Shown one piece after another: positions 23,101-61,030 of a DNA stretch of 64,000 nt (its first letter is position 1; each line of letters begins with the position of its first letter). Both the position numbers and the translations under genes were made by a program. Under the pieces are notes generated by a model that was given only the letters and a program-made list of their open reading frames with translations, was not told the origin of the DNA and did no database searches. The stretch comes from Macrostomum lignano (lineage: Eukaryota): contig NIVC01001680.1 in the NCBI GenBank assembly GCA_002269645.1, positions 1-64,000 on the forward strand, in the 5' to 3' direction.

Positions 23101-23573
23101 CTTGCTCAAGGACACAAGTTGTTCCAGTGGGATCGGGAATCGAACCCCCGACCTTCAAGTCGTGTGTCTAATGCTCTATCCACTAGGCTACAATCCCTTG
23201 ATCCTCTTAGCATTGAGCAATTTCGGAGTCACGAAACAAGTTTTATGAAAAATCGGTTGAGCCTGAAATCAATCACAAGTACCTAATATTAAGAACAACC
23301 AATTAGCTTTAAAAATTGCTGTAAAAAACTCATCCAGGAACTGGGCGAAATCTTCACCGACGTGGCCCGCCTGGTTGTCGACCAGGGCGAGGTGATTGAC
23401 AGGATCGATTACAACCTGGATCAGGTTGAACCCGAGTGCACGAGGGTCTGCAGCAGCTCAAAAAGGCTGAGAAATATCAGAAGAAAAATCGCAAGATGCT
23501 GATCATTCTGATCCTGGCTGCTCTGGTGGTGTTCTTCACAATTCTACTCGTGTTCACCAAGTTTAAGCGGTGA
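20160..23573 (+). CDS. STX16: Syntaxin-16, exons 20160-20353, 20907-21060, 21768-22064, 23338-23573; first exon not found; one apparent 1-nt deletion near 23431
   Basis: MQYDFDRIRAKMRELAQMHDKHLNR|PSLDD..SEFRASQSGYLRRLKSRE..VQQREQEI..IFTDVARLVVDQGEVIDRIDYN and a C-terminal TM (KNRKMLIILIL..) match STX16. All splice phases are consistent. Confidence 0.92.
20396..20876 (+). repeat. 22/23-bp minisatellite (CAAGTATGAGAGTCCCGATTTCC) in a STX16 intron
   Basis: Direct tandem array. Confidence 0.95.
21238..21760 (+). repeat. 21-bp minisatellite (CCTACTGAACCCCACACCCCA) in a STX16 intron
   Basis: Direct tandem array running up to the acceptor at 21767. Confidence 0.95.
22890..23197 (-). mobile_element. 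tRNA-derived SINE with CORE-like central domain, copy 1
   Basis: Reverse complement has a tRNA-like head (GTAGCCTAGTGG..GGTTCGATTCCCG; A/B boxes) and TGTGTCCTTGAGCAAGACACTTAAC..CAGCTGTACAATGGG. Matches the copy at 29374. Confidence 0.8.
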
Positions 23574-23900
23574 TCAGAGTGACTGGACTGGTTCACTGCA
23601 ACGACAATTGGAATATGTTAATAACAGCTGAATATAGTCAGTAATTATCAATAGTAAAATTAATTATGTTGATTCGTGTTCTATTAAATTATCTGAACTG
23701 CTTTATTAACTGTATATTGCATTGTGTCTCGTCCTCTTGTGATCTGTGTTTTATTTATATATTAGTAGAATCCAAATATAACAATTATTGATTATTGTAA
23801 TTGACAATTAATTGAGCGGGTATTACCTTTAGTTACATTTTCCTGATGTTTGTACACTTTATTTGTCTTCGTTTTTTAAAAACTTTCAGCATATTGCGCT

Positions 23901-23944
23901 GGAATTGCCGTGGAATCGCCGTGGAATTTCCGTGGAATTGCCCT
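23901..23944 (+). promoter_or_regulatory. Four tandem 11-bp GGAATTGCCGT-type motifs upstream of LRAT-caspase gene 1
   Basis: GGAATTGCCGT GGAATCGCCGT GGAATTTCCGT GGAATTGCCCT; the same motif is at 27242-27252, upstream of gene 2. Confidence 0.45.
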
Positions 23945-24125
23945 GTCGCAGCTTTGCACGCATATGTATGCCTTTAAAACTAGGAACGAAACAGCACTGT
24001 ACAACTCAAAGTAGAAGTTTGAATGTTGTACTTAAATGCATGTGGACACAAAAATGGTGTGACTTCTAGGCTATACCAGCTAGCAATCTGACGCTTAACG
24101 GACTTGCTGGATCTTGACTTAAAGC

Positions 24126-26509
24126 ATGTGCTTGAAGCAGGTCCTCACCTTCGAAGGGCAGGATCTGGTCGAGGACGCCCTTTGGTCGCTGCGGCCTGGC
24201 TGGCTGGTCAAATTCAAAAGCGGGCACTCCTGGCAAACCGGGGTCTACATTGGCATCGGATTGCTGAGCATCTCCGAAAATGGCGAGTCGTTTGTCACGC
24301 CACGACAAGAGGAGTGTGATACTGGCAACACCAGTCCGCTGCATCACCTGGTCTGTCACCTACCCAGGTGCAGTTCCAGCCGTGAAGGTGTGCTAGCAAT
24401 CAAGGACTTTCGAGAATTGGCCGAGAACTCTGAATCCATTAAGGTTTATGAGTGCAACTGCGACGAGGCTAAGCGGAAGAGCGTCATTCGTGCCTGTCTG
24501 ATGCGGCTGGGAGAAGTGCGAGTCAATTCCGCCGAACTTTTTGAGCACTTCTCTGCGTATAGGAAGGGGCAGTGGAAAACAATTTTCACAAATGGCTTTA
24601 CTTTGCTTTGCGACGTTTTTAAAAGTTTCATTGGGCAGAGGCCTGCCACTGGAACAGCAAATGACTTGTCATCGGATTTGTGAGTAGGCGAAACATTTTC
24701 TTAATCTGGCATCAACTTGGGTCTTTTTAAGATCGGTTTTCTGAGTTTCTGGCGGTGACATCAAAGTCTGAGTAGGACACTGACATCACCAGGGACTCAA
24801 ACATGTAAATGGTGCTTGGGTCATCAGGGGTAGTTTTATAAAGTGCCAAGGCTTCACCATCTTACGTGTACATTTTGCAATTTCCACTCACTAATACAGT
24901 TATCACATGACTATAAGCGATAAACCAATTACAGGCACATCTTTCTGCTGGAAAACACATCTGACTGGGTTGACGCTATTTCTCAAGAAAGCCGCCAACG
25001 ACTAAGCGACTTCTCTAGAGCGTTGCTGGTTTCACCAAATTATGAAACAGCAAATGGCTTTGAGACATTTCTAAGTTGGATTGCGGGACTTGAAAGCGAC
25101 AGTCGTGGCAGCGGGACGGCTGCCTTGACAACCTCTGCGTCACATTATCTGCGTTCGTTTACCAGCGCCAGGATTTCGCCGAAGTCAAAATGGTCTGGCG
25201 CAGCAGTGCAGTTTGAGAGGCTTAACGACAGTCTACAAGGTACGACCATGATAGTGTGGGTAACGGGTGCAAATGTACATTTATGTTTACTTAGCGGGTA
25301 AATTGTACCCTCAGCTCGACTCTCGTACCAAACTACATGTACATGTACTGTAGCTACATGTAGCTGCGTTCGATGCCTTGAGGCTTGAGTCAACCACAAA
25401 CAAAGTGCGGGGTTGTGTGTGTGTGATCGTATCTTTGTCTTGCCTCCTCGCTCCTGAACTGTAGCCCTGTGAAATAAATGCGTCAATATATTTAAGGTTC
25501 ATTTTTTTACCATACATTAATTCGGCCTATAGTTGATTTTAAGAGCTCGATCATTTTGTCATCTGACATTTCAGGACTCGACTCTTTCTTTAACGAGCTA
25601 CTGAATAGCTCCACCAGAAGGTGACTAATGTTTTCAATAGCTACATGAAATTACATACCAGACATTGCGAGTATGCCATTAGTAAACTAACTTTGCACTT
25701 CTTGTACTCCTAACTTCAGCGAGGAAAATGCTGCAATTGCCGCTCCTGAGACTCGCACTACCCGACGCAACCCTCCGTCTCTGGATTGCTACCCGGTAAC
25801 GTCTCCGCAAGGATTCTGCGCGGTCATCAACATCAACAACTACGATGACAATACGAACCTTGGCCGCCGCTCCGGATCAGAGCACGACGTTGCTCGCATC
25901 AGAGAGGTGTTCGAAAGCTCAACTTTGTGATAGAAGTCAAAGAGGACTTGACGTCACACGAAATCGACAGTTTTTTGACGAATTTAGCCCACGACGAAAG
26001 GCTGGAACAGCACGGATGCTTTGTGCTCTTCTTGATGGCGCACGGCTTGAGGCGAGAAATCTTCGGTTGCAACGGAATGCCAATAGACTTAAGCCGCATC
26101 GTTCAGTCATTCAGCTCCACATTTGCCCGGGCCTGCAAGGTAAGCCCAAGATCATCGTGATTCAGGCTTGCCGAGGCACGCGACTTCAATTCGGTCGCGC
26201 GGCCCCTTGAGAGATAGCTCGTCGGATAATGGAGAGTTCGGGTGCTACTCTCCTAGGGGCAAAGACTTCTTGGTGTGCTTTGCAAGCGGCGGAGATACTC
26301 CGGCTTTTCGAGATGCAAATACCGGTTCCGACTATGTACAGGCACTGTGCCGCGAGGTTGAGACGCATCACCAAAGTGAGCACATTGTGGACATTGTCAC
26401 CCGCGTCAACAATGCAGTTTGGCGAGCTCCGGTGCAGCAGGGTGAAGTGCAACTGTACACAGCTCCTGAGTTTACTAGCAGTCTCACTAGGAAGTACTAC
26501 TTGAGCTAG
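24126..26509 (+). CDS. Gene 1: catalytically degenerate LRAT/PLAAT-like domain + helical linker + caspase (HG, QACRG); 4 exons; three apparent 1-nt deletions in the caspase exon
   Basis: Exons 24126-24679 (phase 2), 24935-25239 (phase 1), 25575-25620 (phase 2), 25720-26509. Caspase motifs: GFCAVININ, RRSGSEHDV, LMAHG (26035-26046), KPKIIVIQACRG (26163-26177), DFLVCFAS, GSDYVQALC, APEFTSSLTRKYYL. Frameshifts near 25915, 26120 and 26180-26207. Confidence 0.8.
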
Positions 26510-27371
26510 TTGAGATCCAGCTTTATTAACTGGAAACTGATTTAATAAAAAACTACTGCTTTCCCTTCATAGTATTTGAAAGTACCTCCTTCAGCTAATT
26601 ATGTTGATTTCTGAGTAATGTGAAGTTGAAAATTAAAATCCATTATCCAATCGAGCTTCATTTTGCCGTATTAACGCTAATTAGTTACCCGATCAACTTG
26701 ACTTGAACGCGTAATTGATCTTTAAAAAGCAATGCGTTCTTTCGGTATAAAACGTCTCTTATCAACTACTTAAGATTCACAGATCATTACCGTTTTTAAA
26801 ACAATACCTGTTATTTTCATGTACGCTACAGTTTGTATTGTAACGCTACCCAGCTGAAAAAATGCTTAGAACTTTTGCTGTTTCTTTTCTACCGTCGCGC
26901 TTTAAAAAATTTATACATTTTTCCACAATATAATCACTGTATACTTATTTATCAAAAAATAACTTTGCACTCTTCCGTAGATCACCTGATTTTGCATACG
27001 ATGTTTTGTTTTTTGAAAAAAACGTCTACTGAGCAGTTTCCGACGAGTCCACTTGGTCAATTGCCTTGAGAAACAAAAATGAAAAAGAATTGTGCGTTTA
27101 ACTGTTCAAAGACAAGACTATTTTTCTTGCTACGGAGGAATGAAATTCTGCTGTTCTGTTGTAGTTGTTGTCTGCATAGTTGGACATTAAAAACAGCCAG
27201 TCCTGCATTGGTGCACTTGTGGCAAACTACGGCAAGTCCTTGGAATTGCCGTGGATTTTTCTTTTAAATTAAAGCATGCACACAGACTACTCAACTCATC
27301 TATCGACGCGTGTACGTTCGGTGAGTTTAAGACATGCGCTACTGCTAAGGCACTTTGCTAACTTTGAAAAA

Positions 27372-30439
<3,068 letters not shown>

Positions 30440-31156
30440 GCTTTGTGAATTTGCGACTGTTGAGCAATAAACATCGCTACTGCACTTCTGCGGCACGTGA
30501 CTGAGCTTGACTAATACGAGCTAATGCTACGCTTCTATTAAAATGAATTCCAATGCTTAATATGTACTTTAGTAAATGTTCGTAAATGTTACGGCCTAGG
30601 GTTGACTTATCAGATATTGTCTAACAGTAAAAAGAAAGTTTTTAAAAATATAGCACGTAGCGATAGTTACTTTTCTGTCATACTTTAGTTTACTAGCATT
30701 GTGGAGATATGAAGAACTTTACTGTTCCTTAGTGCTCAGATCAGTTATTTTAAATGTAATATTTATTTGATTTATAGACGACTTATGTCAACTATTTTTA
30801 TTAATTAAAATAGCAGCCTTTACTCCTTCCCTTCAATTAAATACATTGCGCAATTTCAAAGCAATCCTGCAAGTTTAGCAGAGTTTGACCCTGGATAGTT
30901 CGTATAGCTATTAGAACTACTTGGTTTACTCATTTAAAAATTAAACTTTATTTGCTTCTTTAGCCTTCTCCAAACCAGGTCTTTACCTGTTCCATGCTTC
31001 ATGCGATAGCAGTTTGTTCTGAGGACCTTATCTAATCAGTATCGAAGAGAATACAAGAAGACAGGTTGAAGCGTTCCCTAGTCATGTGAGCAGACGCAGC
31101 CAATGCATAAATTGCTTGGTGCTTGGCAATGCAATTGCTTTGATCGATCCGGAGAA

Positions 31157-32716
31157 ATGTGCGTCGGATTCACCAACGCTTACAAAGACTTCCCGTACTG
31201 GAAGGTCAAGGAGGCCCTGGCCGCCATGACCCCGGGCTCGGCCGTCAGCTTCAACCGGATCGGCTTGTTCCACTTCGCCATCTACCTCGGCCTCGCCTGG
31301 CCCAAAGAGACCCTCGACGAGCCGATCCCGCTGGTGTGCCACTTCTCCGGCGACGCCAGCTCGGAGCCCATGGCCTCGGTGCGGCTGGACGACTTGCGCG
31401 AGGTGGTGCAGAACTCCACGGTGCGGGTGTACAAGTGCAGCTGCGAGCCGGCCAAGCGGATGCGGGTGGTCAGGGAGAGTCTGGCTCGGGTTGGCGAGGA
31501 GGGCTACAACCTGGTGACTAACAACTGCGAGCACTTCGTTCGCGACATCATCAACAATAGAAAGTTCAGCTACCAGTCCTTCTGGACGTTTGCTGCGCCG
31601 CTGGTGCAGCTGCCCCGGCTGCTCATCGGAGCGCCCATCGGCGGATCCATCGCTTCGTCGGCCTCGTTGAGCGCCTGCGTTGCCAGCAGTCTGACAAAAT
31701 TCGCGTAAGACTTCATCAAACCGTTTGATTAAACGAGCTTAAACTATTCATTAGTGCTATTAGTCCTCGTACTAATAGCGATGGACGATAGAGATTCCAG
31801 GTGACATTAGATGACTTACTTACTTGACTTAGCTGCAGGGCGGTCCGAAGACGCAGCGGGGAGGCGAGCGTCGCTCATTCCGCTAGCCCCTGAGAAGTCC
31901 GCATAGGCTAGGGCACAGAGCCGGTCAGGGAGGTCTTCCGGCCCCGTCTGTAGCGTTGTCTTCAGTGGGGAAGACGGAGGCTCGTTTGGTAGCTCGGAGG
32001 AACCGGATGAGTCGTTGGATGTTCTCAGGCCGGCAAGCGTCGTCCAGAGACGGGTTGGGCCCGAGGTGATTGAGCCGGTCTCGGTTGCAGGCCGGGCAGT
32101 AGCAGAAGAAATGCTTGGCGTCTTCGTTCTCGAAGTTGCAAAAGCGGCAGAGTTCGTTCCGGCGAACGCCTCGGAGGAACCGTGGACGTCTGGCAAAGCA
32201 ACCGTGACCTGTGAAGGTCATAGTGAAAGCGCGGATATCTTTTCGATTTTGGTTCAAAGGATTCTTTGCAGCTTGGTGACGGGCAGGGCATGCCGCCCAT
32301 TAGATGACAATCATGAGCCTTGTCTTTCTTTCAGAGCAAGACATTTATTGCCTCCCAACCGTCTCTGCAGCTCCTTAGGTCTCATCAATCCCGACATGGA
32401 CCTCCTCGAGATCTCACTCTCGGGCTCCTCCGGTCTGTCAGCATCCGTTGACGTGAATCCCTGCTGCACCAAGGTGTACACTGGGCCAAACCAGAGCATC
32501 GAGCAGGAGCTGTACCACTGCCTCACCTGCGGCATCACCGGTAGCAGGGTCGTGTGCCGGGCCTGCGTGTTCATGTGCCACACCGACTGCGACACCAGGT
32601 GCTTCAATGACGGTCCAGGATTTTGCGACTGCCAGCACCAAATGTGCCTGGTCAGTTCGGAAGCAGCTCCATTCGACGAGCCCACTGAGTCTGCGGAGTC
32701 TGTTGTAAATAGCTGA
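31157..32716 (+). CDS. Gene 3: LRAT/PLAAT-like domain (H, H, NNCEHF) + hydrophobic segment + UBR-box-like zinc finger; 2 exons, ~297 aa
   Basis: Exon 31157-31704 (donor GC|GTAAGA, phase 2) + 32371-32716 (acceptor CTGCAG|C). FHFAIYLG, VCHF, YNLVTNNCEHF; C-x17-CLTC-x8-CRAC-x3-CH-x2-C..CDC..C. Confidence 0.85.
31814..32290 (-). mobile_element. 5'-truncated non-LTR retrotransposon 3' end in the gene 3 intron
   Basis: Minus-strand FTGHGCF..LCRFCNFENEDAKHFFCYCPA (LINE C-terminal CCHC region) followed by a (GTAA)n-like tail at 31814-31831. Confidence 0.75.
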
Positions 32717-33348
32717 CCGTGTTTGGATATACCGAGCCAATTTTAACAAAACTGGGCAGTGTCGAATCTGCTATTCCATGCACACTGATTGCAAAAACTT
32801 TCATTTAGAAATCTCGCTTCGTTTTTTACTGTTAAAAGGTGCGTGTTCGACTTATTTAAGTGAATATGCGTAATGTTTCATTCGCTGATCTACTGCTCGA
32901 TTCCTGCTTGAAGTGTTTGTAATTAAAGATCCATACAAAACATACATTGTTACATTATACTATGCTCCTCTAAACAAAATGAGTGATATAAATATAAGCA
33001 GAGTCAGTTTTCTATTCTTAGCCCTCACTTCTCTGTAATTGACGGGAAAATGAACCGAAAATATTTTCGTTGGATGCTCAAAAATAAGCATGACACAGCA
33101 AGAACGAATGCTATTTTCATATTCCTTGTTCACGAGAAGAAAGACGTGCGTGCTGGCATTTAAAGACGTCTCGTAGTAAATTTCCAAGAAATTCTACGAA
33201 AAATTTGCATTATCTTACTTGAATAAACTTTACTCTATTTAAGCGTACTAGCAATAGAAAAGGCTGGTCCTTCTGGCTTATTTTAACTTTGCTGTCAGCC
33301 AAGCACCCTGTCTAAGACTTTAACCTACCCGAAATTAGGAAACGCGCG

Positions 33349-34944
33349 ATGTGCCTTGACTCATTGGAGAGTCGCTGCGAGGGCGATGGTCAACTCTGTA
33401 GGGACTTCGGCACAACGGAGGCTGGATTGGCGCGAGCGCTCATCGAAGCATCGCCAGGCTCAATCGTCAGCTTCGTGCTCCGGCCCAATCGATCATTTGG
33501 AGATCTGATCTGCCATCGACATTTCGGAATCTATCTTGGTCATGCATGGATTGCCAAGTACCACCAGGCTCTGGTTTGCCACAGTTACAAAAATCGACTG
33601 ACAGTGTCGAATTTTCGCGACTTGGCTGAGCTATCAATGGAAATCCGAGTTTACAAGTGCGACTGTGCCGATGACCGCGACCAATTTGTTGCTGAGTGCT
33701 TCCGCCAGTACGGTAGCTCGCCTGAGGGTACCTGTCTCGCTAGTATCAAACGAATTGTTTCACCTGAAAGCACGAAAGAGCCAACGGCTGTCACCAAAGG
33801 ATGGTTCAAGCGACTGCTGTCGAGGTATGGACCATCGGTTCTCTCGAATTCTGGACTTTTTAAATGGCGTCTTAGTGATCCGGCGCTGTCGAAGACTGAT
33901 GAACCGCATTGCGTTGTCCTCGACGGGCTGCTCGATTCACTGGCTGGCTTGGATGAAAACTGGTAAAGACTGAAGTGCAGTTGAATATCTATTTTCTGTT
34001 TTTTGTCTATGGTATTCTATGGGATTAATACATCCACTAGGTAACCTATACGATAAAAGCATTCAAGACCATTATAGTAACACAAGTAAAACTATTGTAT
34101 CTATTAAAACTTGTTTCATCAAAATTGGCCCAGTAGTTTCGGAGGAGATATGAAACGCACATTACATACAAACAGCGCGTCACTTTTAGTATATTGAGTG
34201 TTCTCACACAGCCTTTTGCGACCTTACAGAACTACCTGAAGGCGTACAACCTGTAGTCTTCAAGTGCCTAAAGTTTTGATTCGTCAATTTTTTCAGAGAT
34301 CTATGGGGTCTTACCAAAATCGCATGCCGAAATTTGCCAGCATAAGATTTCCGAATGCCCTGAATATTTTCTATTTGGCATTAGTTACAGAGGGGGACAC
34401 TCTGTATACAGGGGTGAGGGTTATGTATTCACAGACTTTAGTAGCAACTACAAACTGAAATGATCCCTGTGACTGCTGCTGGAAGGTTGCCAATAACCTT
34501 CTTTAGAAGGCAGGCATTCAGGCAGATACATGTAAACTTCCTGTCGTCAAAGTTTTGCAAAACGATCCACAGAGCCTTTCTTCTAAACCATTTCGCAGTC
34601 TCATCGGCCTACTGAGCTCAAAGTTGGACATGCTTGAGGTCACTCTACACAGACAGCAAGTGGGCAGCTCTGCCAGCCCTAGCATTGCCATCCGCATCAG
34701 CAATCGCTGCACTCGAGACTTCACGGGTGAGGATGCCCAGGCTCACCAGGAGTTGCACGAGTGCCTCACCTGCGGCATCCGCGACGATCAAGCGATCTGC
34801 AGGCGCTGCGCAGAAGTGTGCCACGCCAATTGCTGCACCCAGAGGCTCAACGGGGATAAAGCTCGAGAAGTGACAGGGTACTGCGACTGTACACATGACT
34901 GCTCACCCGAGCTCAGGCAGGATTCCCATCGGAACCGATCCTGA
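33349..34944 (+). CDS. Gene 4: divergent LRAT-like domain + UBR-box-like zinc finger; 2 exons, ~319 aa
   Basis: Exon 33349-33962 (donor TG|GTAAAG, phase 2) + 34599-34944. RHFGIYLG, VCHS and YKCDC align with the paralogues; NCEHF is replaced by GTCLAS. Second exon: CTRDFTG..QELHECLTC..ICRRCAEVCHANC..YCDC. Confidence 0.78.
34114..34195 (+). mobile_element. Helitron/Helentron-type (DINE-1-like) terminal fragment
   Basis: TTTCATCAAAATTGGCCCAGTAGTTTCGGAG..ACATACAAACA..CTTTTAGTATAT resembles the terminal signature of Helentron-derived elements. Confidence 0.4.
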
Positions 34945-35995
34945 ATGTTGGCATGAGTTGATTCCATTCGAAGAAACGTATTACATGTACCATCAGCCAT
35001 GTATAAAATATCATTTAAATACGCTCGTACATTGGTCTCTACTGTTATGCCTACGTGATCGTTAATTTTGCTTATATAAAAGTAATGTCGCACGGATTAG
35101 AACAGTGAGGCATCGACAATTCAAGTTAGGATGAATCACATTGGCCACTATAATTTCGAGTGCTTACTAGTCATCGCTCGCATTACTATATAAACCTAAA
35201 CCCATTGGTGATAATCTCTTTCCACTCGTGTTCACTGTTAATTTCCCATTCATATCCATTAAGAAAGTCAATTAGTCTCTGCACCTGCCGTGGCTAATAT
35301 AAAACTAAGAACTGTGACAAAAATTGTTTTTACTTGCGCCATTTTTTACTTTAGTACCTGCCGACATGCGGTTTATCCCTTCTCTTTCTTAAATATTGCT
35401 GTTACGTACATTAGTATTGAGTATGCACTACCCGACCTGAGGTCGCTGACAAATATGTAATTTTACATTACATCAACGTTCAGCCGACGTTTGACGACTT
35501 TTATTGCTGTACGGGGTATGTTGTTTTGTACAATTCCATTAAATACTATTCCTAATACAACTAATATGTTTAGCTAATAAAAGCATCATTTGCATTCGCA
35601 AGCGAGAAGCCATTAAAATACAAAGCATACAAGAGATTAATAAACGACATAAACTAGCTGCATGGATCTCTCTCATTGTGGCGTGGACGTACGCTCGCAG
35701 CCAGTCAGAAAAAAATTCAAGGGTGTAAAGACTTGTTGAAAAATACGCGTACATATTAAAACAGTGTGGACTTGCTAATTCTCGTAATGAAACGTTAATA
35801 TAGAGCGTTTGAGATAAAAATAGAATGACGGTTGGAGAGAGTGTACAGAGAATGCGTACAGCTCGTAAAGATAAGTGTACAGCGAAGCAAGTTCTGTCGC
35901 TTACAAGAAGTCGCAATTTTCCAGACTGTGGTTTGCTGTCGCTAATGCCCCCCCGCAACATTTTGTAGAATTCGTTAATTCTAGCTAAATAAGCT

Positions 35996-38900
35996 ATGCT
36001 GCCTCCAGCTAAAAAGGAATCAAGAAAGCGAATACCTTCAGAAGTCTATGAAGACTTTATGATGGCCATTGTGACCAATGACACTGAAATTATTGACGAG
36101 TTCTTGAAGATTCAGCCACCACTCGACAAAAGAGTGTCATTTCTAGACGACAGTATGACCCCTGACGCTCACGTGTCTTCTGGGAAGCCAGAAATTCTGA
36201 GAAAGCTAATTAAGGCCAACGCTGACGTCGACGTAAAAGAACTTAACGACACTTCGCCACTGTACGTTGCTGCTCAAGAAGGACACGACAAGATCGCGGA
36301 CCTTCTAATTGAAGCGCAAGCGGAAATCGACTTCCAGACCACGGACGGGACTTCACCTCTTTACCTGGCTTCGCAGCACGGCCATCACAGAGTGGTGAGG
36401 TCGCTCATCGAAGCTCAGGCAAGTGTCGATTTACGAAGAAGCAACGGAGCATCGGCGCTGTGTATTGCGGCCCAGAACGGGCATCGGCTCGTGACCGACT
36501 TGCTGATCAGAGCTCAGGCGGATGTCAACATTCGGGCGGACAATAGCACAACACCTTTGTACATAGCTTCGCACAACGGCCACCATCTCATCGTTGAATT
36601 GCTGCTCAAGGCTCGGGCCGATCCAAACCTGCTACACTCTGACGGTACTTTTCCACTGTACGTTGCCGCTTACAATGGTCACTATCAAGTGGTTTCACTG
36701 ATAGTCGATGCCGGCGCGGAAGTCAATCTGCGAGACAGTCAAGGCTGTTCCTCGTTGATCATCGCCTCACAAAATGGTCACCGGCAAGTAGTAGATGTGC
36801 TCATTTCCGCAAACGTCGATGTCAATCTTCCAGCTAACAATGGCGCAACGCCGATCTACATGGCCTCGCAGGAAGGTCATAAGCAAGTGGTCGACGTGCT
36901 TATCAAAGCACAGGCTGATATAAACCTTTTAGCGAATGGCGATGCTTCGCCAATTTATACGGCAGCTCAGGAGGTCACGACCAAGTGGTTGACTCCCTTA
37001 TCCATGCGAATGCCGATGTCAATTTTCAGAGGAGCAATGGCCAATCGCTTCTATTTATTGCCGCGCAGGAGGGTCACGAGAAGGTTGTGGAATTGCTTCT
37101 GAAATCGGGCGCAGACCCCGACCTACCAACTGGCAACGGTTGGTTGCCTCTGCACGCAGCTTGCAAACAAGGTCACCACATGGTCGCTGATCTTCTTATC
37201 AAAGCCCAGTCTGATATTAATCACTTGGCTCAAGGCAGCCTGTCGCCTCTGCTATTGGCTATTGAACAAGGTCACAGCAGAGTTGTAGAGCTACTCATCA
37301 AAGCGCAAGCCGAAGTCGACCTAACAATCTCAACAGGAGTATCACTTTTCGAAGTGGCTAAAATGCTGGGTCATGACCGAGTGACAGCACTACTTCAGAA
37401 AGCAACCGCCAGTTCCACGGCGTCGTCTGAGACCCTTCAGGCAAACGAATTAAAGAATTCAAAGTAACGAAGGGTTTTTTATTTCGTCAACTACTTTGAA
37501 GTACTACTTATTTTAGATAGCAAAAACTTAAAATTACACTAATGTTACTTTTCAGACAAGCGCTAGAGGACGTTCAATTGAGCTTGGAACTAAACTCAAC
37601 CCTTACTAAGGCAGGGTTTGTGAGCTCCCGAGCTGCAATGCAGAGCGTATTGGCTGACGTTCTTCAAGAGATTCTTCGAAAGCGATGGAATGGTGGCCAA
37701 ATCTTCGTAGTTGGAAGCTACTCTGAAGGCTGGGGAAACAGTCTAAAAACGTTGGACGGCAGACCCGATGTAGAGTCCGACATAGACGTGATGAGGCTGA
37801 TAGATGGGAGACTTTACCACCTGAATTACCGGTGCAACTGCTCCGAAGATGAGAAACTATTGGTGGACTACGAGAATGGGCACATATTTTGTCCTGGATA
37901 TGGTCTGTGCTAATTTGTTCATCATGTAAAAATCAACTTGCCTCACCGGTCTTAATGCGCCCGTTTATGTCTGCTTTCAGCTTCAACTCCCGCGAACCCG
38001 ACAACCGGCTCCAATCTGAGGCCAGCTGTGGACGAAGTGAGCGGCGTTCGGCTCTGCTGCTACCCCCTCATCGCACCTCTGCTTACGCAGAGACTCGAAG
38101 ACTCCCAAATCCCCGGCTCGGTTTTAAGTGCTCTTCAACAGGAACTAACCTCGTCGCCATGTCACGTGGTACACGCCGCACCGCCCGGACATGCTGGTGA
38201 GCAGCTCCGGTTGAGCACGACATTTTTAGAGAGGCGCCTGTTGCGAAGTCTCAGCACTCTACAAGGTCAGCTCTTTGTTACCCTCAAGTACATAGTAAAA
38301 AAGGTCATTTGTCACAAAGAAGGCTTCAATGCGGCGGGTTTGAAGGCGTATCACATGAAAACAATTACGTTTCGAATGCTCGAGCGAACACCAAGAGAGA
38401 TCTGGAAGCCGGAGAACTTAGTATTCCTCATCAGAGAGTCCCTGCTCATGCTGATTAATGACGTGAGAAACGGCTGCACACCTCAGAATACAGATGGTCG
38501 AATCATGGATCACTTTTTCCTATGCGACGCCGCGCTCTACCTCAAAGGTGTCGATCGCAGCCAGTCGATGCTGCAGACTTTGGAAGCAACAACCCAAGTC
38601 TTGGAAGAAGTGACAGCGAATTTGCCTCAGTTTATACTGAACTTTATAAAAAGTTTGAAACAAGTCAGCGACTCAGGAAGATTCTACTTTCATCCCTTCC
38701 TCATCTTGCCGTATCTTAACCAAAATCCCATTCCACTATCTGGGAGAATTGAGTACCACGAAATTTACGATGTCGTCCGAAAATCATTGCTTTGCCTGAC
38801 CCACGACGGCAGCAGCTATGAGTCGCAACTGTATCTCACAGAGATTATCGCTAGGCTACCAGACAGTGCCCGCACAACCCGTGAGGTTCTCAGAGCGCTG

Positions 38901-39491
38901 GCGTGTCTAAAGTTCGGATACAAGGACTCTGCCAAGAAGATAATAAAGTACACCAGGTCCTTCAAGGTGAGCCGAGGCTTTGATTTACAAGCGGAGGACC
39001 TTTTAGCTGCCGAAGCGACTCCGGAGAAAGTGTGGAATCATCTGAGAACTCAAGATTCTGCCTGGAAATTCAACTTTCATTTTGAGACGAGGCCAGAATT
39101 TCAGTTTCTTCCCGAGCTCTGGGCCGCCTGCTTCCCAACTCAGACGCTGAATTTTGACACCTGCTTTTACATCAACTTTGATGCCATGCTGCAAAGCATG
39201 CGCTTTCAACTGCTGGCGGACGAGGAGGAGACGACTGTCCAGTCTTGGATCCGTGATGTGGCCGGGCGGGAGGACGCCGACGAGCAGGAAGTGACGGTGG
39301 CGCTGCTCTGTTTGCGCGATGAAGCATTGTTCAAACCATTGCTGGACCGAGCGCAGTGGTTTCCGGCAGGAATTCCTAAAAGGATCCTTGAGGAGCTCAG
39401 GGCAAGATTTCAAGAGGAAAATTGGAACGACTCTAGCCAGTGGGGTCTTCAGCAGTTGAACCGAATTTTAGAACGCTTGCTACTTCGCTAA
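35996..39491 (+). CDS. Ankyrin-repeat (~13) cGAS-like receptor / Mab-21-family nucleotidyltransferase; 3 exons, ~1108 aa; one apparent 1-nt deletion near 36973
   Basis: Exons 35996-37463 (phase 2), 37556-37902 (phase 1), 37981-39491. Ankyrin consensus repeats; NTase motif VVGSYSEG..ESDIDVM (37710-37793); VDEVSGVRLCCYP (candidate third Asp); Mab-21 C-lobe LSTLQGQLFVTLK..LKAYHMKTITF..W..NL..MDHFFL. Confidence 0.85.
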
Positions 39492-40981
39492 ATATTACAA
39501 GCTAATAATGCTACAATTCAGATAAACTCCACGACATCAGACTTTAAAAAGATTTTTGATTCTGACAAACTGAATGAAATACATGAATGATTACAACTGA
39601 AAAATTATCTGAGTTTCATATTACAATTGCAATGCAGTTTTTTAACACCGAGTTCTAATTCGGTACTATCAGTAGCAGTATTTGAATGTTTTACGAGTGC
39701 AAGGGGAAAATATAAAGTTGTGGCTGCCCAAGAGAAAATATTTCTGACCAATGTGAAGCCTCAGGACAGTTGAATGTCATGTCAGAGACATGAGTGTCGA
39801 TCATGTCTGTGATGGATTTTGCTAGAATTTCTATGAGCATTATGTCTCTACCTTCTTGAGTCATTAGGTAAACTACTATATCATCTGCAGTAAGGTTTTT
39901 AAAATTCGAAACTTTCTCCGAGATTTCCTGCTCACATTTACAACGGAGTGTGCTACCAAGGTTCCGACTACACTTCTACCCCACATGGCGCTTTGGACAG
40001 GTCCTGTTCTCGTAAGAGATCTTTGGTCTCGCAGTCCTTAGATATTGTTTCACAGGCCAGTTTATGGTTTTTTAATCTAAACTGTTAGGGTTTAAAATCT
40101 GGATTTCAAGATTCTGGATTTATAATTTCAAGAACATACTTTTCGATTGAGTAGCGCTATTTGAACCTGAGGCAGTGACATTTTTGCAGAGTTCTCTACT
40201 CTTTGTCTCCAGTGTGTCTCCAGTATCGTGTGCATTCTACTGAAGTGTAATTCATATAGATATTTCTACGAGGCATAAAGAAATCATATGCATTTCTAGT
40301 TAACCACAACAAGCGGCTGTTATAGTTCAAATAACGTAGGTTTTTCTTTTTACTATTTTACGAGACGTTCCTTAATCACCCAACCCACTCTTGGCACCAC
40401 CCTCATTTAGGACTTTAATGCAATAAAAACACTGTTTAGTTTATAATCTTTTAACAGCTATTATTTTTATCGTAAATCCTTGATTTACCAGACAACTACA
40501 TTCGCGAACTTGACTTTAGTTTAGCCTAGTCTGCGTATACTTGCTATCGCTGTAAATCATTCTCCTTATCTACGAGCGTAACTCCGCGGAGAAGAAATGG
40601 ACGCCCGCCCTAAGTCACTCGCTGTGTACACCGCAACCTGTGCCTCATTCACACCGTCTGTAGGCTTTTAAAGACGTCTAACTCACGCCTGCTTGCTCTC
40701 TGGTGTGCCTGCACGTTTCTAAGGTGAAGTTCGTGAAAATTTCTGTCCTATAATTGTTGATTTGCAAGGACTATACTTTTGCAAACCCAAGATAAAGACT
40801 CTAGCAAATTTTGATAAAGCGAACTCAAAATACTCGCTAGCAAGTGTTGAGTCAAGGGCATTGTTGATCAAGCAGTCTGACTCAAGATTTCGTCAGAACT
40901 ATTTTATTCTTTGAAAACGAAAAGCGTACAGCCAGCCAACAAAGATCAGAGAGCTTTAGCCTGGAGTCTACCTGTAATGTC

Positions 40982-42358
40982 ATGTGCGTGCGGCTCAAGA
41001 CCGGATTCACCGATTTCAAGCCGCAAAGAATTCGCAATGCGATTCGAGCCACAGTTCCCGGAGGCGCCGTCAGCTTCAACAGGATCGGATTCCACCACTT
41101 CGCCATCTTCCTGGGCTGGGCCCGGCCCAAAGGCGACGACTCGGAGCCGATCCCGCTGCTGTGCCACCTCTCCGGGGACGCCACCAGTCATCCGACATCG
41201 GTTCGACTGGAAGACTTCAGAGACATCGTGCAGAATAGCATCATCCGAGTCTATAGGTGCTACTGCAGCGCTAGCAGGAGATCCCAGGTGATACTGGAGT
41301 GCCTCTATCGAGTAGGCACCATTGGATTCAACCCAGTCACTAACAATTGCGAGCACTTTGTTCGGCAGGTGATTTGCGGCGAGAAGGTCAGCCACCAGAC
41401 AAATCTGACGCTGGCTGTGCCGCTGCTCCGCCTGCCTCGCCTCATCATCGGCAGCTCCATGGTGGGCGCGGCCGCTCTGTCTGAGTCGTTCAGCTGCGCC
41501 GGGAAATTAGAGGACAGCAGGTAAATAAGAATACTCACCCCTGCTTATGAATTGGGTGTCTCAACATTTGACTGCTGAATATTTTACTGCCACAAATTAA
41601 CAGCCGATCCTAACCATAACCTAAACACTACCCTAAACCCTAAACTAAAACCTCAACCTAATCCGTAACTTAAGCCCTAACTTAAACCCTAACCTAATCC
41701 CTAGCCTTAAACACTAACCTAAACCCTACCCTAAACCATAACCTATTAAACCATTACCTAAACCCAAACCTAAACCCTACCGTAAACCATAACCTAAACC
41801 ACAACCCTATATCGTCAAACTTCAGGCTCCCGGTTGTGCAAAAGGGGAACTAACTTGCATAATATTAAATAGCATGAACGATGCAATGAAATATTATCGG
41901 CCATAGTACGCTCGTATCACAGAAACATAATATTTCTATAGTATGTGCTACTGCTGCTGATCTGATCTATCTGTTAAACATGATAAACAATCATAAAAAT
42001 ACATGATCTTCGTTTCAGATCTCTAGGTATGCTCAACCCGGACATGGATTTGATTGAGATCACCTTGTCAAATCGTGGTCTGAATTTGACTAGCATCAAG
42101 TTAAACGCCAGCTGCACAAGAGATTTCGAAGGCTGCAGCCGCTTTTGCAAGCAGACTCTGTACAGTTGCAACACCTGCGCAGGTGCTGCAGTTTGCAAGA
42201 CGTGCCAGAAGTTCTGTCACAAGGACTGCCAGCTCACAGCGGGCAAGGTGCAGGACGGTCAGTGCCACTGCACCCACAGCAAGAGAAAAGAGGCGACTCG
42301 GTTGCACCCAAAAATGATTTCAGAAATCAAGTCTCAAAGAGAAATTAAAATGGTCTAG
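40982..42358 (+). CDS. Gene 6: LRAT/PLAAT-like domain (H, H, NNCEHF) + UBR-box-like zinc finger; 2 exons, ~292 aa
   Basis: Exon 40982-41520 (donor AG|GTAAAT, phase 2) + 42019-42358. HHFAIFLG, LCHL, TNNCEHF; CTRDFEG..YSCNTC..VCKTCQKFCHKDC..QCHC. Confidence 0.87.
41609..41809 (+). repeat. Degenerate telomere-like (CCCTAA/CCTAAA) interstitial array in the gene 6 intron
   Basis: About 200 bp of imperfect CCTAAC/CCTAAAC units. Confidence 0.75.
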
Positions 42359-43433
42359 AATGATTCATTCAGAATTACAATTGGCTAATGTTTTTAGGCA
42401 GCAATGTTTTTTACAAAAAATTGGCTGTTACAGTATTGGTTGGTGCTTTTGCAGTTTTTGTCGAGAAGAGAGATTAAATATTCAACATGCTTTGGTCAGT
42501 GAGCATGAAAGCACCGTCAAGAGCTACTTAAATATAGCTCTTATAGATTTTTTGTGTTCCACATGGACTGCTTTCTCTGTATTGATTCTCCATTGCTTCG
42601 TTCATAGTTACATTACATTTACATTTGAATAGCAATCGAGAATAAACCCTATTATTCAGTAGATTCATATCAGACAAGTTGAGACTTTCACGCGTTCTAA
42701 ACAATGGAAAGATAGTGCTGCACAGCTTGAGGGTGCAATAATGCCTCTCAGTACTAGACCACGAGTGCCTATGGATAAAGTTGTCCACTCGTGGTCTAAG
42801 CATTATTGCACTCTCAAGACGTGCATCTGTCACATTGCGACTGGCAACATAGCCAAGTGAGGAGAAGACGTCAAATTTACCATAGACAAAGATCTAGCAA
42901 GTACTTTTATTTAAAGTCTATGGTGAAAACCATGATTAACTGCATTCACTTGTTGTCTATACTAGCCTATCACCAATGAAGACAGCCAAAGTAATTTGAA
43001 ATTTGATTTGATTGGACGATTAAGAGACTGGAGTGCAGAGCGATTTGATTGGTCTCGTGGGCAGAGAGTATGATGTACCGGTACATTGATTACGCGTGAC
43101 GAGGAACAGTTGAATTGACAATCAGATAAGATTTTCATTTTTAGTATATGGATAATAGGCGAGTCTATACTCATAAATGTTTAATTAGCCGTTTTGACTC
43201 ATCACTGTGTCTGGATAAAAAGGTTCTTTATAATGTCTACAATAGTATATGTTGATACTACACTATTAATATAATAACACCGGTAAAGTAATCTTAAAAA
43301 GTCAACAATAAACAAATAAGTAAATTAGTATTGTTTAATAATATTACTACTAACCATTGCAATAAACTGACTACAGTGACTAGTATATAATTAAAATCAA
43401 TTCTGATGCGACTGATTGGTTATCATTCCTTTA

Positions 43434-43687
43434 TTTCATTTCCTGTAGTCCTGTGTAGCCCAATCATTTCCTGTAGTCCTGTGTAGCCCAATCATTTCCT
43501 GTAGTCCTGTGTAGCCCAATCATTTCCTGTAGTCCTGTGTAGCCCAATCATTTCCTGTAGTCCTGTGTAGCCCAATCATTTCCTGTAGTCCTGTGTAGCC
43601 CAATCATTTCCTGTAGTCCTGTGTAACCCAATCATTTCCTGTAGTCCTGTGTAGCCCAATCATTTCCTGTAGTCCTGTGTAGCCCAA
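43434..43687 (+). repeat. 28-bp minisatellite (CATTTCCTGTAGTCCTGTGTAGCCCAAT), ~9 copies
   Basis: Direct tandem array with period 28. Confidence 0.95.
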
Positions 43688-44260
43688 TACTAAACAAAAT
43701 TTATTTTTTGAATCCGATGTTTTTGAGTACAGTACATTTGACAACCATATTAACATTTTTAAGTGTAATTAACGACAAAATATTTTGGAGAGAAAGTATA
43801 AAAATTATGTATCTAGTTACATATTAGCAATGCATCACATGTAGCCAACGCAATTTCATAGTCAAATAGGTTTGAATTGAATAGCAGGTCTTGACGTCTT
43901 CATGCGATTCTGCGTCAAAGTTTCTTCTCCTTCTTCTCGATATTTTTAGCGGCATGAGCCCGTGCGGCCTGTGGTGAATGTAAACACTGCTTGCCAAGCC
44001 CTGTGTCCAGCGCAGTACGTGTTCGAGCAAAGAACAACTAGATCAAAACGATATTAAACCTCGTGGCCAGTCTGCATATGCTTGACAAAGCTTGTAAGCT
44101 CGATTCTCTAGCCAAAAAAATGTAGATAAATATGAATAAAGCAACATTGCAAAGCTGAAACGTAATTACTTAGGTAAAGCTGGAAGAAAGCTCGATTCTG
44201 TGGCAGATTTGATTCAAAATTGAATTTTTTGGTATAGTTAGACCGGCCGGATTCGAACCA

Positions 44261-45614
44261 ATGTGCGTTGGATTTCTGAACGGCTACAAAGACTTCAAGC
44301 CGAAGCTATTCAACGAGGCGATCGCCGCTGCAGTTCCCGGGTCCGCGGTCAGCTTTAACAGGATCGGCTTCTTTCATTTTGCCATCTTCCTGGGCTGGGC
44401 CTGGCCCAAGGGCGGCGACTCGGAGCCCATCCCGCTGCTGTGCCACCTTTCCGGAGACGCCAGCACGAAGCCGATGGCATCGGTTCGACTCGACGACTTC
44501 AGAGACATCGTCCAGAGCTGTACCATCCGAGTGTACAACTGCAAATGCAGCGCGAAAAAGAGATCCGAGGTGATACTGGAGTGTCTCTATCGAGTTGGCA
44601 AGATCGGTTACAACCCGCTGACCAACAACTGCGAGCACTTCGTCCGGGGAGTGATCTGCGGCGAGCGCGTCAGCTACCAGACCCGCTGGATTCTGGCTGC
44701 CCCGATAGTGCAAGTGCCGCGCATCGTCGTCAGCACTGCGTTTCTGGGGGCCGCCACCTCCGCTGCTTCGTCCAGCTGCATATCGAAACTCGAGACTAAA
44801 AGGTGAGGGATCAAGGTTCTTTTACAGAATCACCACTAAATTTTTACTCTTCAATGGATTGCCTTTTATCAATCTCAAAATTGAAACTGAACTTCACAAA
44901 GTTCGAAATTTTACATCGTCAACTTTTTTCAAGTTGTGAACTAGCGGAAGTGGCTGGAGTAGTGATTTCGAGATTGCGAAAGATTCTGCTTTTATGAGAC
45001 GATGTGCAATCCACAAAAGTCATGGAGTTCAAATCATGGGGACCAAATAATGTCAGCTAAAGTATGCAGCTCTATCTTGGACTTGATGACATTTGGATTC
45101 CAAACCCAAGTAGGTCACATGTTCGGAAGTGATAAGATCGCTGAATATTTGAGTGTATTCGCCAGCTGTTATAATGTGCTTGTTAAGTGCGAGTTAGATC
45201 AGTACGTTTACATGAAAACCATTGCTATTCCGCACGAATATCTCATCAAGAAAGCAACTTGCAATCTTCATCAGGTCCCTAGGTCTTCTAAATCCAGAGA
45301 TGGACCTGGTTGAAATCCTCGTATCAAACAAGGGCCTGAATTTGAAAGGCATCAGACTGAATGCCAGCTGCACAAAGGACTTTGATGGCTCCAGTCGATT
45401 TCCGATGCAGACGCTTTACAACTGTGAGTTCTGCAACGGCAGCAACTCAATCGCTGTGTGCAAGCCCTGCTCGAAACTCTGCCATCCAACTTGTGGATCG
45501 CTAGAAGGCTCTGTGGCTCAAGGTTCGTGTCGTTGCAGCCACCAGCCCATCGCAAAAGCGGCAACACAAACGACTCCGCAGACTTTGAAGAGTTCAGGCA
45601 CTTACACCCCATAA
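44261..45614 (+). CDS. Gene 7: LRAT/PLAAT-like domain (H, H, NNCEHF) + UBR-box-like zinc finger; 2 exons, ~293 aa
   Basis: Exon 44261-44802 (donor AG|GTGAGG, phase 2) + 45275-45614. Close paralogue of gene 6. FHFAIFLG, YNPLTNNCEHF; CTKDFDG..YNCEFC..VCKPCSKLCHPTC..SCRC. Confidence 0.87.
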
Positions 45615-47448: not shown

Positions 47449-48042
47449 TTACCGGCGGCGCAGTAGGGGTTGAAGAACATGCTTGAGAAAAAGGCTCAGA
47501 GAGGAAAACGCGCGCGAGAAAGGGCTGTTGCGAGCCCGACCATGTTGTCGCATCACCCAGTGGATGAACGAATTTAGATCCTTTCCACTAGCAAGTTTAA
47601 AAAACAGATAGAACAGAATCCAGGCTCCACAGTGGGCGGTACGGGGATCCTGCACCGCATAGCGCGTGTAACGCCAGTTTTTTGGATCTCCACAATTTCG
47701 GCTCATCCACTGGGAGATTTCAGGCAGCGGGTGCAAACCTAGCGGATCAAAGTATTCACCTATCCTAGCTCGTCTAACAGCGCCAATAGGGCCTGCACAG
47801 ACCCAGGCAGCAACCCAGTGTTTTCCGGGCAAATTGCTAGGGTCCGTGTTTACGATGAAAAAATAGTTACGCGTGTCTTGAAAGTACGGACTCGTGTTTA
47901 GAGTAGGGATCGTTGGTAGAGAATTGCTTGGGTAAACTCCCATAAAAACTGCATCAGGATAAATACGCAATAGTTTTAGGCATACCGAGCGCAAAAACAC
48001 ATTAGTTACGCCAGATAGGATAGTAGTGTTATCTACTTCCAT
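47449..48042 (-). CDS. Adenain-like (C5) maturation cysteine protease
   Basis: IVNTDPSNLPGKHWVA, EYFDPLG, VQDPRTAHCGAWILFYL: His/Asp/Gln/Cys catalytic motifs. Confidence 0.92.
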   Translation of the reverse strand: MEVDNTTILSGVTNVFLRSVCLKLLRIYPDAVFMGVYPSNSLPTIPTLNTSPYFQDTRNYFFIVNTDPSNLPGKHWVAAWVCAGPIGAVRRARIGEYFDPLGLHPLPEISQWMSRNCGDPKNWRYTRYAVQDPRTAHCGAWILFYLFFKLASGKDLNSFIHWVMRQHGRARNSPFSRAFSSLSLFLKHVLQPLLRRR

Positions 48043-49825: not shown

Positions 49826-49859
49826 ATTTTTAATTGTTATTATGTTCCCATTTCACAGT

Positions 49860-51315: not shown

Positions 51316-51393
51316 TATCAGAGTGTGTTGATACTCAATCCGCGATGCGTCCGACCAGTTAGCTTATAGCTGCTACAATATTTAACTACAAAC

Positions 51394-52099: not shown

Positions 52100-52103
52100 A
52101 TTT

Positions 52104-52555: not shown

Positions 52556-52606
52556 ATCCTAATCTCCTCACTCTATATTTAATGATGTGCTTGTTTGCTT
52601 ATAAAT

Positions 52607-53617: not shown

Positions 53618-53666
53618 GTTTGTTTCCTTGGTGGCGATGGTTCAGTCTTGAAACAACATGGCTTGC

Positions 53667-54371: not shown

Positions 54372-54376
54372 GTAGC

Positions 54377-61014: not shown

Positions 61015-61030
61015 TTGCTGAAGTGAATAA

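Follow-up and report, generated by a model that had tools for sequence, protein, structure and literature searches.

A window of 64,000 nucleotides from the free-living flatworm Macrostomum lignano (GenBank assembly GCA_002269645.1, contig NIVC01001680.1, positions 1 to 64,000) was analyzed, and all positions given below are those of this window. Six open reading frames (ORFs) on its plus strand corresponded, by database match, to M. lignano proteins, and together they form one PLAAT/LRAT-like family, the members of which are called genes 1–6 here. All six start with Met-Cys (MC), and we found that the cysteine at position 2 (Cys2) was kept across a diverged family, even in members that had lost their catalytic residues. 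In the following, the genes and their domains are described, the conservation of the start is examined, and the possible roles of Cys2 are weighed. Among these, a Cys/Arg N-degron-type signal is tentatively preferred.

Gene set and domain architecture

When all six-frame ORFs of the window were searched with a hidden Markov model (HMM) of the family, exactly six copies were recovered; the six-gene set of the preliminary description of this DNA was therefore not a subset. A weak and partial match to the family profile at 324–434 on the plus strand (E = 0.022, profile positions 95–130) possibly stems from a seventh, fragmentary copy close to the edge of the window. The product of gene 5 was nearly identical to UniRef A0A1I8J0N8 (P0002) and to P0004, gene 6 shared 78% identity with NCBI BOX15_Mlig006329g2 (P0001), and gene 2, compared exon by exon, shared 98.6–100% identity with NCBI PAA65113 (P0005). 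Genes 1–6 are tandem paralogues and hence do not represent six independent events; the identity between gene 1 and each of genes 2–6 was 25–33%. Moreover, UniRef A0A1I8G9H9 (P0155, 1822 residues, “t-SNARE coiled-coil homology domain-containing protein”) proved to be a chimeric model, which joins a syntaxin-like gene (20163–23570) to genes 1–4, including their caspase and finger exons, and spans 20163–34944 on the plus strand.

The LRAT-like first exon or ORF of gene 1 lies at 24126–24683 (beginning MCLKQ), and the LRAT or LRAT-like exons of the other genes lie at 27372–27928 (gene 2, MCLKE), 31157–31704 (gene 3, MCVGF), 33349–33962 (gene 4, MCLDS), 40982–41520 (gene 5, MCVRL), and 44261–44802 (gene 6, MCVGF), all on the plus strand. 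In genes 2–6 this exon is closed by a canonical GT..AG intron in phase 2, with donors GT at 27929 (gene 2), GTAAGA at 31705 (gene 3), and GTAAAG at 33963 (gene 4). The junctions, placed with the guidance of database protein models, run from the end of the LRAT exon to the start of the next exon as 27928/28491 (gene 2), 31704/32371 (gene 3), 33962/34599 (gene 4), 41520/42019 (gene 5), and 44802/45275 (gene 6). The raw ORF of gene 2 ends in a poly-Tyr run because a (TAC)n microsatellite (27929–28089) begins directly at the donor of its first exon. An akin intronic repeat, encoding (LSIY)n, splits a paralogue on another M. lignano contig (L003) at 19976–20300.

The LRAT-family label given in the preliminary description was correct. 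Genes 2, 3, 5, and 6 passed the Pfam LRAT threshold (PF04970) with 35.6–51 bits versus a cut-off of 24.3 (E = 5e-12 for gene 2 and 2.1e-13 for gene 3). Genes 1 and 4 had no Pfam LRAT match above threshold, and both were found by a profile built from the other four genes (E = 1.6e-22 and 3.1e-10, respectively). The catalytic His, His, and Cys, the last within NCEHF, are present in genes 2, 3, 5, and 6. Gene 1 has Gln for the first catalytic His and ELFEHF for NCEHF, and gene 4 retains both His and a Cys, the latter within a degenerate GTCLAS in place of NNCEHF. Judged by these lost or degenerate residues, the LRAT part of gene 1 is therefore inactive as an enzyme, and that of gene 4 probably is as well. 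In gene 1, the chimeric model P0155 splices out at about 24527, after “RLGE.”

The fold was examined in two AlphaFold2 models, for which the underlying alignments were shallow (14 and 8 sequences). The best Foldseek matches of the P0001 model, itself of moderate confidence, were 7zom (PLAAT3), 4fa0 (AdPLA), 4dpz (HRASLS2), and 7zot (PLAAT4), with probability 1.00 and target-normalized template modeling (TM) scores of 0.60–0.69. In this model, residues 1–7 had a predicted local distance difference test (pLDDT) score below 50 and were followed by a short strand (10–12) and a helix (14–23). The model of the gene 2 exon showed a strand at residues 3–9 and a helix at 14–21, and the mean pLDDT of residues 1–10 was 82. 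According to the models, a strand and a helix peculiar to the family have been added at the N-terminus, ahead of the first canonical LRAT strand, and Cys2 stands at the very start of this addition. Residues 3, 5, 7, and 9 of the strand form a hydrophobic face in the predicted arrangement, so that Cys2 probably points outward, to the polar face. The “VYxCxC” strand is specific to the flatworm clade. Thus the family shares its fold with human PLAAT1–5/HRASLS and LRAT, and genes 2, 3, 5, and 6 share the His-His-Cys residues and NCEHF with them. In contrast, the human proteins have no MC start, no N-terminal strand-helix, and no fusion to a caspase or UBR box, and they carry a C-terminal transmembrane anchor.

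The LRAT module is joined to a caspase in genes 1 and 2 and to a UBR box in genes 3–6. The caspase-like exons of gene 1 (25748–26509, plus strand), located by the mapping of P0155 and P0007, gave two Pfam Peptidase_C14 matches (3e-5 and 5.8e-11) and contain QACRG. In the window this region is readable only with two frame changes, one of them at about 25910, where TTCGGAAAG reads TTCGAAAG, and it is either a pseudogene or the site of an assembly indel. The downstream exons of gene 2, placed by tblastn of P0005 at about 28491–28662, 28743–28814, and 29714–30439 (plus strand), encode in three exons a caspase domain (PF00656; Peptidase_C14 6.6e-30) with QTSQK in place of QACRG, and the gene product (P0005) is a 539-residue LRAT-caspase protein. 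The degeneration of the two genes is complementary: gene 1 has a dead LRAT part and QACRG, gene 2 an intact NCEHF and QTSQK. In their paralogue P0007 (“Caspase-8-like,” 495 residues), NCEHF and QACRG are both present. Genes 1 and 2, despite their MC start, lack a finger.

An HMM of the finger found exactly four fingers in the window, downstream of genes 3–6. The second exon of these genes encodes about 110 residues, which include a motif of the type S-L-G-L-L-N-P-x-M-D-L, followed by the Cys/His finger. It lies on the plus strand at 32371–32716 in gene 3 (SLGLINPDMDL...FCDCQH, after a phase-2 intron with the acceptor CTGCAG), 34599–34944 in gene 4 (LIGLLSS...YCDCTH), 42019–42358 in gene 5 (SLGMLNPDMDL...QCHCTH), and 45275–45614 in gene 6 (SLGLLNPEMDL...SCRCSH). 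The resulting proteins have about 260–310 residues and no E3 ligase domain. The Pfam zf-UBR cut-off (PF02207, 25.2 bits) was not reached by the fingers of genes 3, 4, and 6 (17–19.1 bits), and that of gene 5 had no match. A profile of the fingers, when compared with solved UBR boxes, matched UBR4 best (8j9r, E = 3.9e-8), then FBXO11 (7yrb and 5vmd, about 2–3e-6), and then UBR5, PRT6, and UBR1/2. The UBR-box-like fingers of the preliminary description are, by this profile match, true homologues of UBR boxes, although they lie below the Pfam cut-off. Their invariant positions are C32, C62, C65, C69, H70, C85, and C87 (numbering of the gene 6 finger), and the Cys/His spacing, C..C..C..C...CH..C/H......CxC, is that of the UBR4 and FBXO11/UBR6 boxes (subfamily 2). 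By this likeness, the finger is of the UBR4–7 type.

In known UBR boxes, the amino group of the substrate is bound by an Asp within “FCDCG” (UBR2 D150, UBR4 D1715), and UBR4 makes further contacts through F1671 and F1713 (PMC10687169). At the position of D1715, genes 3 (FCDCQH) and 4 (YCDCTH) have Asp, whereas gene 5 has His, gene 6, P0001, and P0006 have Arg, and P0003 has Gln. The Phe of F1671 occurs only in genes 5 and 6 and in P0001, that is, only where the Asp has been lost, and the position of the Arg-selecting Asp153 of UBR1/2 is His in all fingers. The full set of contact residues of N-recognins was found in no finger copy. The flatworm fingers thus differ from UBR4 in lacking the complete F1671/F1713/D1715 set, in having the amino-group Asp in only two of the four window copies, and in belonging to small proteins that are not E3 ligases.

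These results weaken a suggestion of the preliminary description, namely that the MC start is read by the proteins' own UBR boxes: the Asp occurs only in genes 3 and 4 of the window, the Asp153 position is His, and genes 1 and 2 are fingerless. No finger was found within reach of the LRAT module in L001, in L004, or in some M. lignano paralogues. The MC start is present in fingerless members too and therefore belongs to the LRAT module rather than to the finger, and reading by a protein's own UBR box cannot be the general mechanism, given the fingerless and caspase-bearing members.

Conservation of the Met-Cys start

ATG TGC was found at 24126, 27372, 31157, 33349, 40982, and 44261 on the plus strand, that is, in all six ORFs, as the preliminary description had stated; the third codons are TTG, CTA, GTC, CTT, GTG, and GTT, respectively. 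Such starts are uncommon in the background. TGY follows 3.3% of all ATGs in the window, and an MC start occurred in 3 of about 143 more distant LRAT homologues and in none of 89 metagenomic LRAT-like ORFs. A scan of JGI metagenomes yielded 80 loci (24–57% identity), none of which aligned from the N-terminus or had an MC start, and these loci serve as a background sample only. Relatives were collected by an exhaustive HMMER search, which gave 217 matches. Those that aligned from profile position 1 started with MC (P0003, P0006, P0007, P0015, and P0026), the sole exception being P0005, which is gene 2 with an upstream ATG as its start. A profile search with the six window ORFs returned four database proteins, none of which was new to the set.

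Beyond the window, the analysis covered ten more relatives, drawn from at least four assemblies; nine of them start with Met-Cys-Val/Met. Two other M. lignano contigs carry more paralogues (L002 and L003), which begin with MCVGF or MCVGW. In three other assemblies the starts read MCVGFTNGYYDF (L001, preceded by a stop at a distance of three codons), MCVGGFENDY (L005), and MCVDQKYRR (L006, which is P0026). The exception, L004 (Logan SRR13325274, 3755–4402), keeps CVGWTHGFTDF; here CAC (His) precedes the Cys, there is no ATG, NCENF stands where others have NCEHF, and an acceptor-like TTTTCCAG lies in frame 13 codons upstream. This locus may be a pseudogene or a copy with an internal Cys.

In an alignment of the close family (16 members, 180 well-filled columns), pairwise identity ranged from 17% to 78%, with a median of 34%. 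Only 7 of the 180 columns were invariant: M1, C2, one Phe, the Gly of “PG,” the Phe of the first strand, one Cys of “CxC,” and one Gly. The claim that Cys2 is invariant despite strong divergence thus held in this larger set. Cys was at exactly position 2 in 15 of the 16 members, in both architectures and in several assemblies, and residue 3 was without exception Val, Leu, or Met. Conservation was weaker at the catalytic His and Cys of the LRAT domain than at Cys2. Gene 1 retains Cys2 although one catalytic His and the catalytic Cys are gone, and so does gene 4 with its degenerate motif; the role of Cys2 is therefore independent of catalysis in cis. The start of Met, Cys, and an aliphatic residue is strictly conserved, whatever the catalytic competence of the domain behind it. 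The Cys codon is TGT in one M. lignano paralogue, in L005, and in L006, and TGC in the other members. Since this synonymous change occurred in three lineages and no replacement was seen, selection acts on the amino acid. The TGC/TGT variation, together with the unlike upstream sequences, also ruled out a motif at the level of DNA instead of protein. From this pattern of conservation, the invariant Cys2 probably has a function at the front end of the protein.

Such a function presupposes that the MC codons are the true starts. Genes 1, 4, 5, and 6 are preceded by in-frame stops at distances of 2, 12, 39, and 17 codons, respectively, and no ATG intervenes; the similarity among the paralogues begins exactly at Met-Cys, and the DNA upstream shares nothing; and six database models start at MC (P0001–P0004, P0006, and P0007). 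The sequence thus supports the MC starts of genes 1, 4, 5, and 6 well. Genes 2 and 3 have the upstream in-frame ATGs noted in the preliminary description (27276 and 31103), and its caution about the start of gene 2 was justified, as the NCBI model (PAA65113, P0005) uses the ATG at 27276. In these two genes, Cys2 would be N-terminal provided that the MC ATG is the start. The duplicate of gene 2 (P0154) is too similar to tell whether the 32-codon extension is under constraint.

Possible roles of Cys2

The role we tentatively prefer, as possible rather than probable, is that of an N-terminus-specific signal of the conditional Cys/Arg N-degron type. According to this reading, the six ORFs would be the first coding exons of a family of the Macrostomum lineage, in which a strand and a helix specific to the family lie N-terminal to a PLAAT/LRAT-like domain (a permuted NlpC/P60 fold). 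This LRAT module would have been joined by exon shuffling, each time through a phase-2 intron, to a caspase (genes 1 and 2) or to a UBR box of the UBR4/FBXO11 type (genes 3–6), and translation of the ancestral module would begin with Met-Cys-(Val/Leu/Met). The initiator Met is removed before a small residue such as Cys, and its removal would expose Cys as the first residue. A thiol dioxygenase of the ADO type would then oxidize this Cys when oxygen or nitric oxide (NO) is present, ATE1 would add Arg to the oxidized Cys, and an Arg-recognizing E3 ligase would destroy the protein. The abundance of these lipid-acting and caspase-bearing proteins would consequently track oxygen.

In human cells, 108 of 245 MC- peptides were stabilized by the loss of ATE1 (PMC12377780, PMC11199558). 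Val, Leu, Ile, Phe, His, Lys, or Trp after the Cys promoted ATE1/ADO-dependent instability in these cells, Met not being listed, and Asp, Glu, Ser, or Thr favored protective acetylation by NatA, which was strongly cut by a change from Asp to Leu (PMC12377780, PMC11199558). Proteomes are depleted of MC- starts (PMC12377780; PMC11199558). By these human rules, the Val or Leu at residue 3 of the flatworm family belongs to the degron-favoring class, Met is unlisted, and no member has Asp, Glu, Ser, or Thr. It should also be considered that UBR boxes are a rare class of domains by which N-termini are read; a UBR box and an MC start would be an unlikely pairing in one family if they were unrelated, and the coincidence suggested by these sequences is a notable one.

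Two known systems can be compared. RGS4, RGS5, and RGS16 resemble the family in their conserved MC start and in a Cys2 that becomes N-terminal after removal of Met, followed there by a basic or hydrophobic residue; this Cys2 is also a palmitoylation site. It constitutes an oxygen- and NO-dependent Cys/Arg N-degron (PMC12377780, PMC11199558). These proteins differ in that their RGS domain is unrelated in fold and function, and their N-terminus is a free amphipathic segment, whereas in at least one flatworm member a strand is predicted at about residues 3–12. The plant ERF-VII proteins (MCGGAI...) are likewise a family with an invariant MC motif, and that motif is an oxygen-dependent N-degron. 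They differ in kingdom, in their oxidase (PCO), in the motif that follows, and in being transcription factors (for background on their N-degron, see PMC12377780).

On the other hand, several points weigh against a degron. The substrate rules for residue 3 are human, and their transfer to flatworms is assumed. The two structural models, both with shallow alignments, point in different directions on the accessibility of the N-terminus: the pLDDT below 50 in P0001 (residues 1–7) fits a degron, whereas the gene 2 exon has a mean of 82 (residues 1–10), so that its N-terminal tail may be docked on the domain, as modeled, and be hard for the enzymes of the pathway to reach. Residues 4–12, which read GFTNGYxDF in the finger-bearing subfamily, are kept more than a degron needs, and the family's own UBR boxes are mostly devoid of the Asp that binds the amino group. 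Some of the starts also raise doubts. NCBI models gene 2 from the ATG at 27276, 32 codons further upstream, with A at -3; gene 3 has its in-frame ATG at 31103, in a weaker context; and in gene 5 an out-of-frame ATG lies at 40977, 5 nucleotides upstream of the start. This last ATG has G at -3, a context similar to that of the gene 5 start, and opens an ORF of about 105 codons that overlaps the LRAT exon. Finally, the Cys of L004 follows a His, and an ATG is absent.

Acylation fits the evidence about equally well, and S-acylation is nearly as likely as a degron. Cys2 would then be a lipidation site, S-acylated by a DHHC enzyme or via an acyl-thioester of the LRAT type, perhaps with an N-acyl-Cys after an S-to-N shift, and would tether the module to the membrane that holds its phospholipid substrates. 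This we regard as possible but somewhat doubtful. The structural matches of the fold, PLAAT3, AdPLA, HRASLS2, and PLAAT4, are membrane-acting acyltransferases with an acyl-Cys intermediate. An aliphatic residue follows Cys2 in all members, and the finger-type members, unlike the caspase-type ones, have a hydrophobic segment after the LRAT domain. Moreover, at least 8 of 145 distant Met-starting LRAT homologues begin with MGxxxS, a motif of the myristoylation type, about 20 residues before the PGD strand, which is the place of Cys2. These proteins, all from other organisms, are P0019, P0032, P0034, P0059, P0070, P0108, P0122, and P0151. They have a lipidation-type motif at the equivalent place, but the motif was recognized by eye, and its chemistry is that of Gly2 and an N-myristoyltransferase. 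Other distant homologues have Cys-rich starts (MTCTCTC, MDCTETC, MGANC, and MACGK), and N-terminal lipidation seems, from these starts, to be recurrent in the LRAT superfamily. However, a Cys that undergoes DHHC palmitoylation need not occupy position 2 precisely, yet in the family it never moves from there. Genes 1 and 2 and P0007 have highly charged N-termini (MCLKEKHEFKDDRK) that do not resemble membrane-seeking segments; gene 1 retains Cys2 without a catalytic centre, so self-acylation is not a general mechanism; and P0026 has both an MC start and a C-terminal transmembrane helix. By analogy with RGS4/16, a degron and a lipid anchor may also coexist on the same Cys.

A structural or redox role of Cys2 in the N-terminal strand, as a metal ligand or as a disulfide partner of the CxC in “VYxCxC,” is unlikely in our judgment. 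The Cys would adjoin the start codon here since the strand begins there. The predicted strand of the gene 2 exon, its confidently modeled first ten residues, and the strand and helix of P0001 all fit such a role. The six window genes share four Cys without exception (C2, the one preceding the second His, and both of CxC), and in the 16-member set C2 and one Cys of CxC are the only invariant ones. A zinc or disulfide cluster of four Cys, which the alignment of the six genes had suggested, was weakened by the wider set, in which two of the four are not kept: the Cys before the His is absent in L001, L004, L005, and P0026, and the first Cys of CxC is absent in P0026, so that no four-Cys site is conserved. 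Residues 1–7 of P0001 are also of low confidence, Cys2 appears to be on the polar face of the strand, opposite its hydrophobic residues, and both alignments behind the predictions are shallow.

It is very unlikely that the Cys is internal. Translation would then start upstream, in a 5' coding exon not yet seen, at the AUG that ends the spliced leader, or, in genes 2 and 3, at their upstream ATGs. About 30% of M. lignano genes are trans-spliced, and the spliced leader of 35 nucleotides ends in ATG (PMC8629364). Because M. lignano has introns and trans-splicing, start sites are not readable from ORFs alone. The NCBI model of gene 2 begins at the upstream ATG, and in L004, which has no ATG of its own, splicing at the upstream acceptor (TTTTCCAG, cut before ATT) would let a leader ending in ATG read on into the frame. 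The chimeric model P0155 takes AGs 1–40 nucleotides upstream of each MC ATG of genes 1–4 as acceptors. Against this, P0155 is a chimera of five genes, and its acceptors were forced by the reading frame; they are therefore not independent evidence. The similarity of the paralogues starts exactly at Met-Cys with none upstream, in-frame stops lie 2–39 codons upstream in genes 1, 4, 5, and 6 and three codons upstream in L001, and six database models keep the MC start. A leader that supplies the ATG itself was rejected, as the ATG is genomic in 15 of 16 members and in genes 1, 3, and 4 a leader joined to the AGs close by would miss the reading frame; only L004 fits.

By analogy with the BIR domains of inhibitor-of-apoptosis (IAP) proteins, whose ligand is the Ala motif at the N-terminus of caspases and Reaper-type proteins, the family could also be a self-contained reader of N-termini, although we give this idea only a slight chance. 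The exposed Cys-Val/Leu, possibly oxidized, would be the ligand, and the UBR-box proteins (genes 3–6) would bind the N-termini of their LRAT-caspase and LRAT-UBR paralogues. The changes from Asp to Arg or His might have retuned the fingers to an acidic, oxidized Cys, and oxygen or NO would directly gate the assembly or activity of a complex of caspase and lipid enzyme without an E3 ligase. A reading of similar novelty is that the LRAT thioester hands its acyl chain to the protein's own N-terminal Cys, in a reaction like native chemical ligation.

A Met-Cys merely inherited from the common ancestor of young tandem duplicates, with no function of its own, is very unlikely: genes 1–6 are indeed tandem paralogues, and the whole MCVGFTNGY block is common to many relatives, which are hence not independent, but the next 15 residues are almost unrelated between the subfamilies, overall identity falls to 17–34%, Cys2 stays constant while catalytic residues change, and the synonymous codon changes show that there was time enough for mutation.

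Two other likenesses of the start were rejected. MCVGF recalls the start of class II amidotransferases and other N-terminal nucleophile (Ntn) hydrolases (MCGI...), but the fold is PLAAT-like and not Ntn. It also recalls an IAP-binding motif (MAVAF/MAVPF), which the caspase-type starts MCLKE and MCLKQ do not fit.

Significance and neighboring genes

Conserved MC starts are rare, and the understood cases (plant ERF-VII, animal RGS4/5/16, and IL-32) are direct sensors of oxygen and NO. Here a whole invertebrate family keeps Met-Cys more strictly than its catalytic centre, and it does so on effectors of potentially drastic action, a PLAAT-like lipid enzyme and a caspase, accompanied in several members by a UBR box. 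M. lignano lives in intertidal sediment. If the degron were true, the family would add a new class of substrates under the control of oxygen, in an animal open to transgenesis; if the lipid anchor were true, LRAT-type modules would repeatedly evolve N-terminal acylation. In either case, the start is a testable lead for the fields of N-degrons and protein lipidation, and the LRAT-caspase and LRAT-UBR-box architectures are worth describing. A full-text literature search on LRAT-caspase fusions in flatworms returned nothing relevant to either architecture, and the database names of the proteins were “hypothetical protein,” “LRAT domain-containing protein,” and “Caspase-8-like.” Each domain is itself known. 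What is new is the combination of LRAT, caspase, and UBR box, the clade-specific N-terminal strand-helix with its invariant Met-Cys-aliphatic start, and the “VYxCxC” strand.

Between genes 4 and 5, the plus strand at 35996–39491 carries a gene with strong ankyrin repeats (Ank_2, 2e-88); the ORFs behind it match nucleotidyltransferase and Mab-21_C weakly. Judged by these matches, this gene looks like one for a cGAS/Mab21-like protein, and together with the caspases it makes the locus resemble a cluster of immune or cell-death genes. Upstream of gene 1, the syntaxin-like gene contains a long tandem repeat of LLNPTPH units (21213–22085, plus strand). Beyond gene 6, a Maverick/Polinton-like, virus-like transposon occupies 47449–62620 on the minus strand. 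Several of its ORFs, including that at 47449–48042, had no Pfam match; the others include, all on the minus strand, an rve integrase ORF (49860–51128), a protein-primed DNA polymerase B with an Endonuclease VII domain (55879–58443), and a deoxynucleoside-kinase-like ORF (60289–61014).

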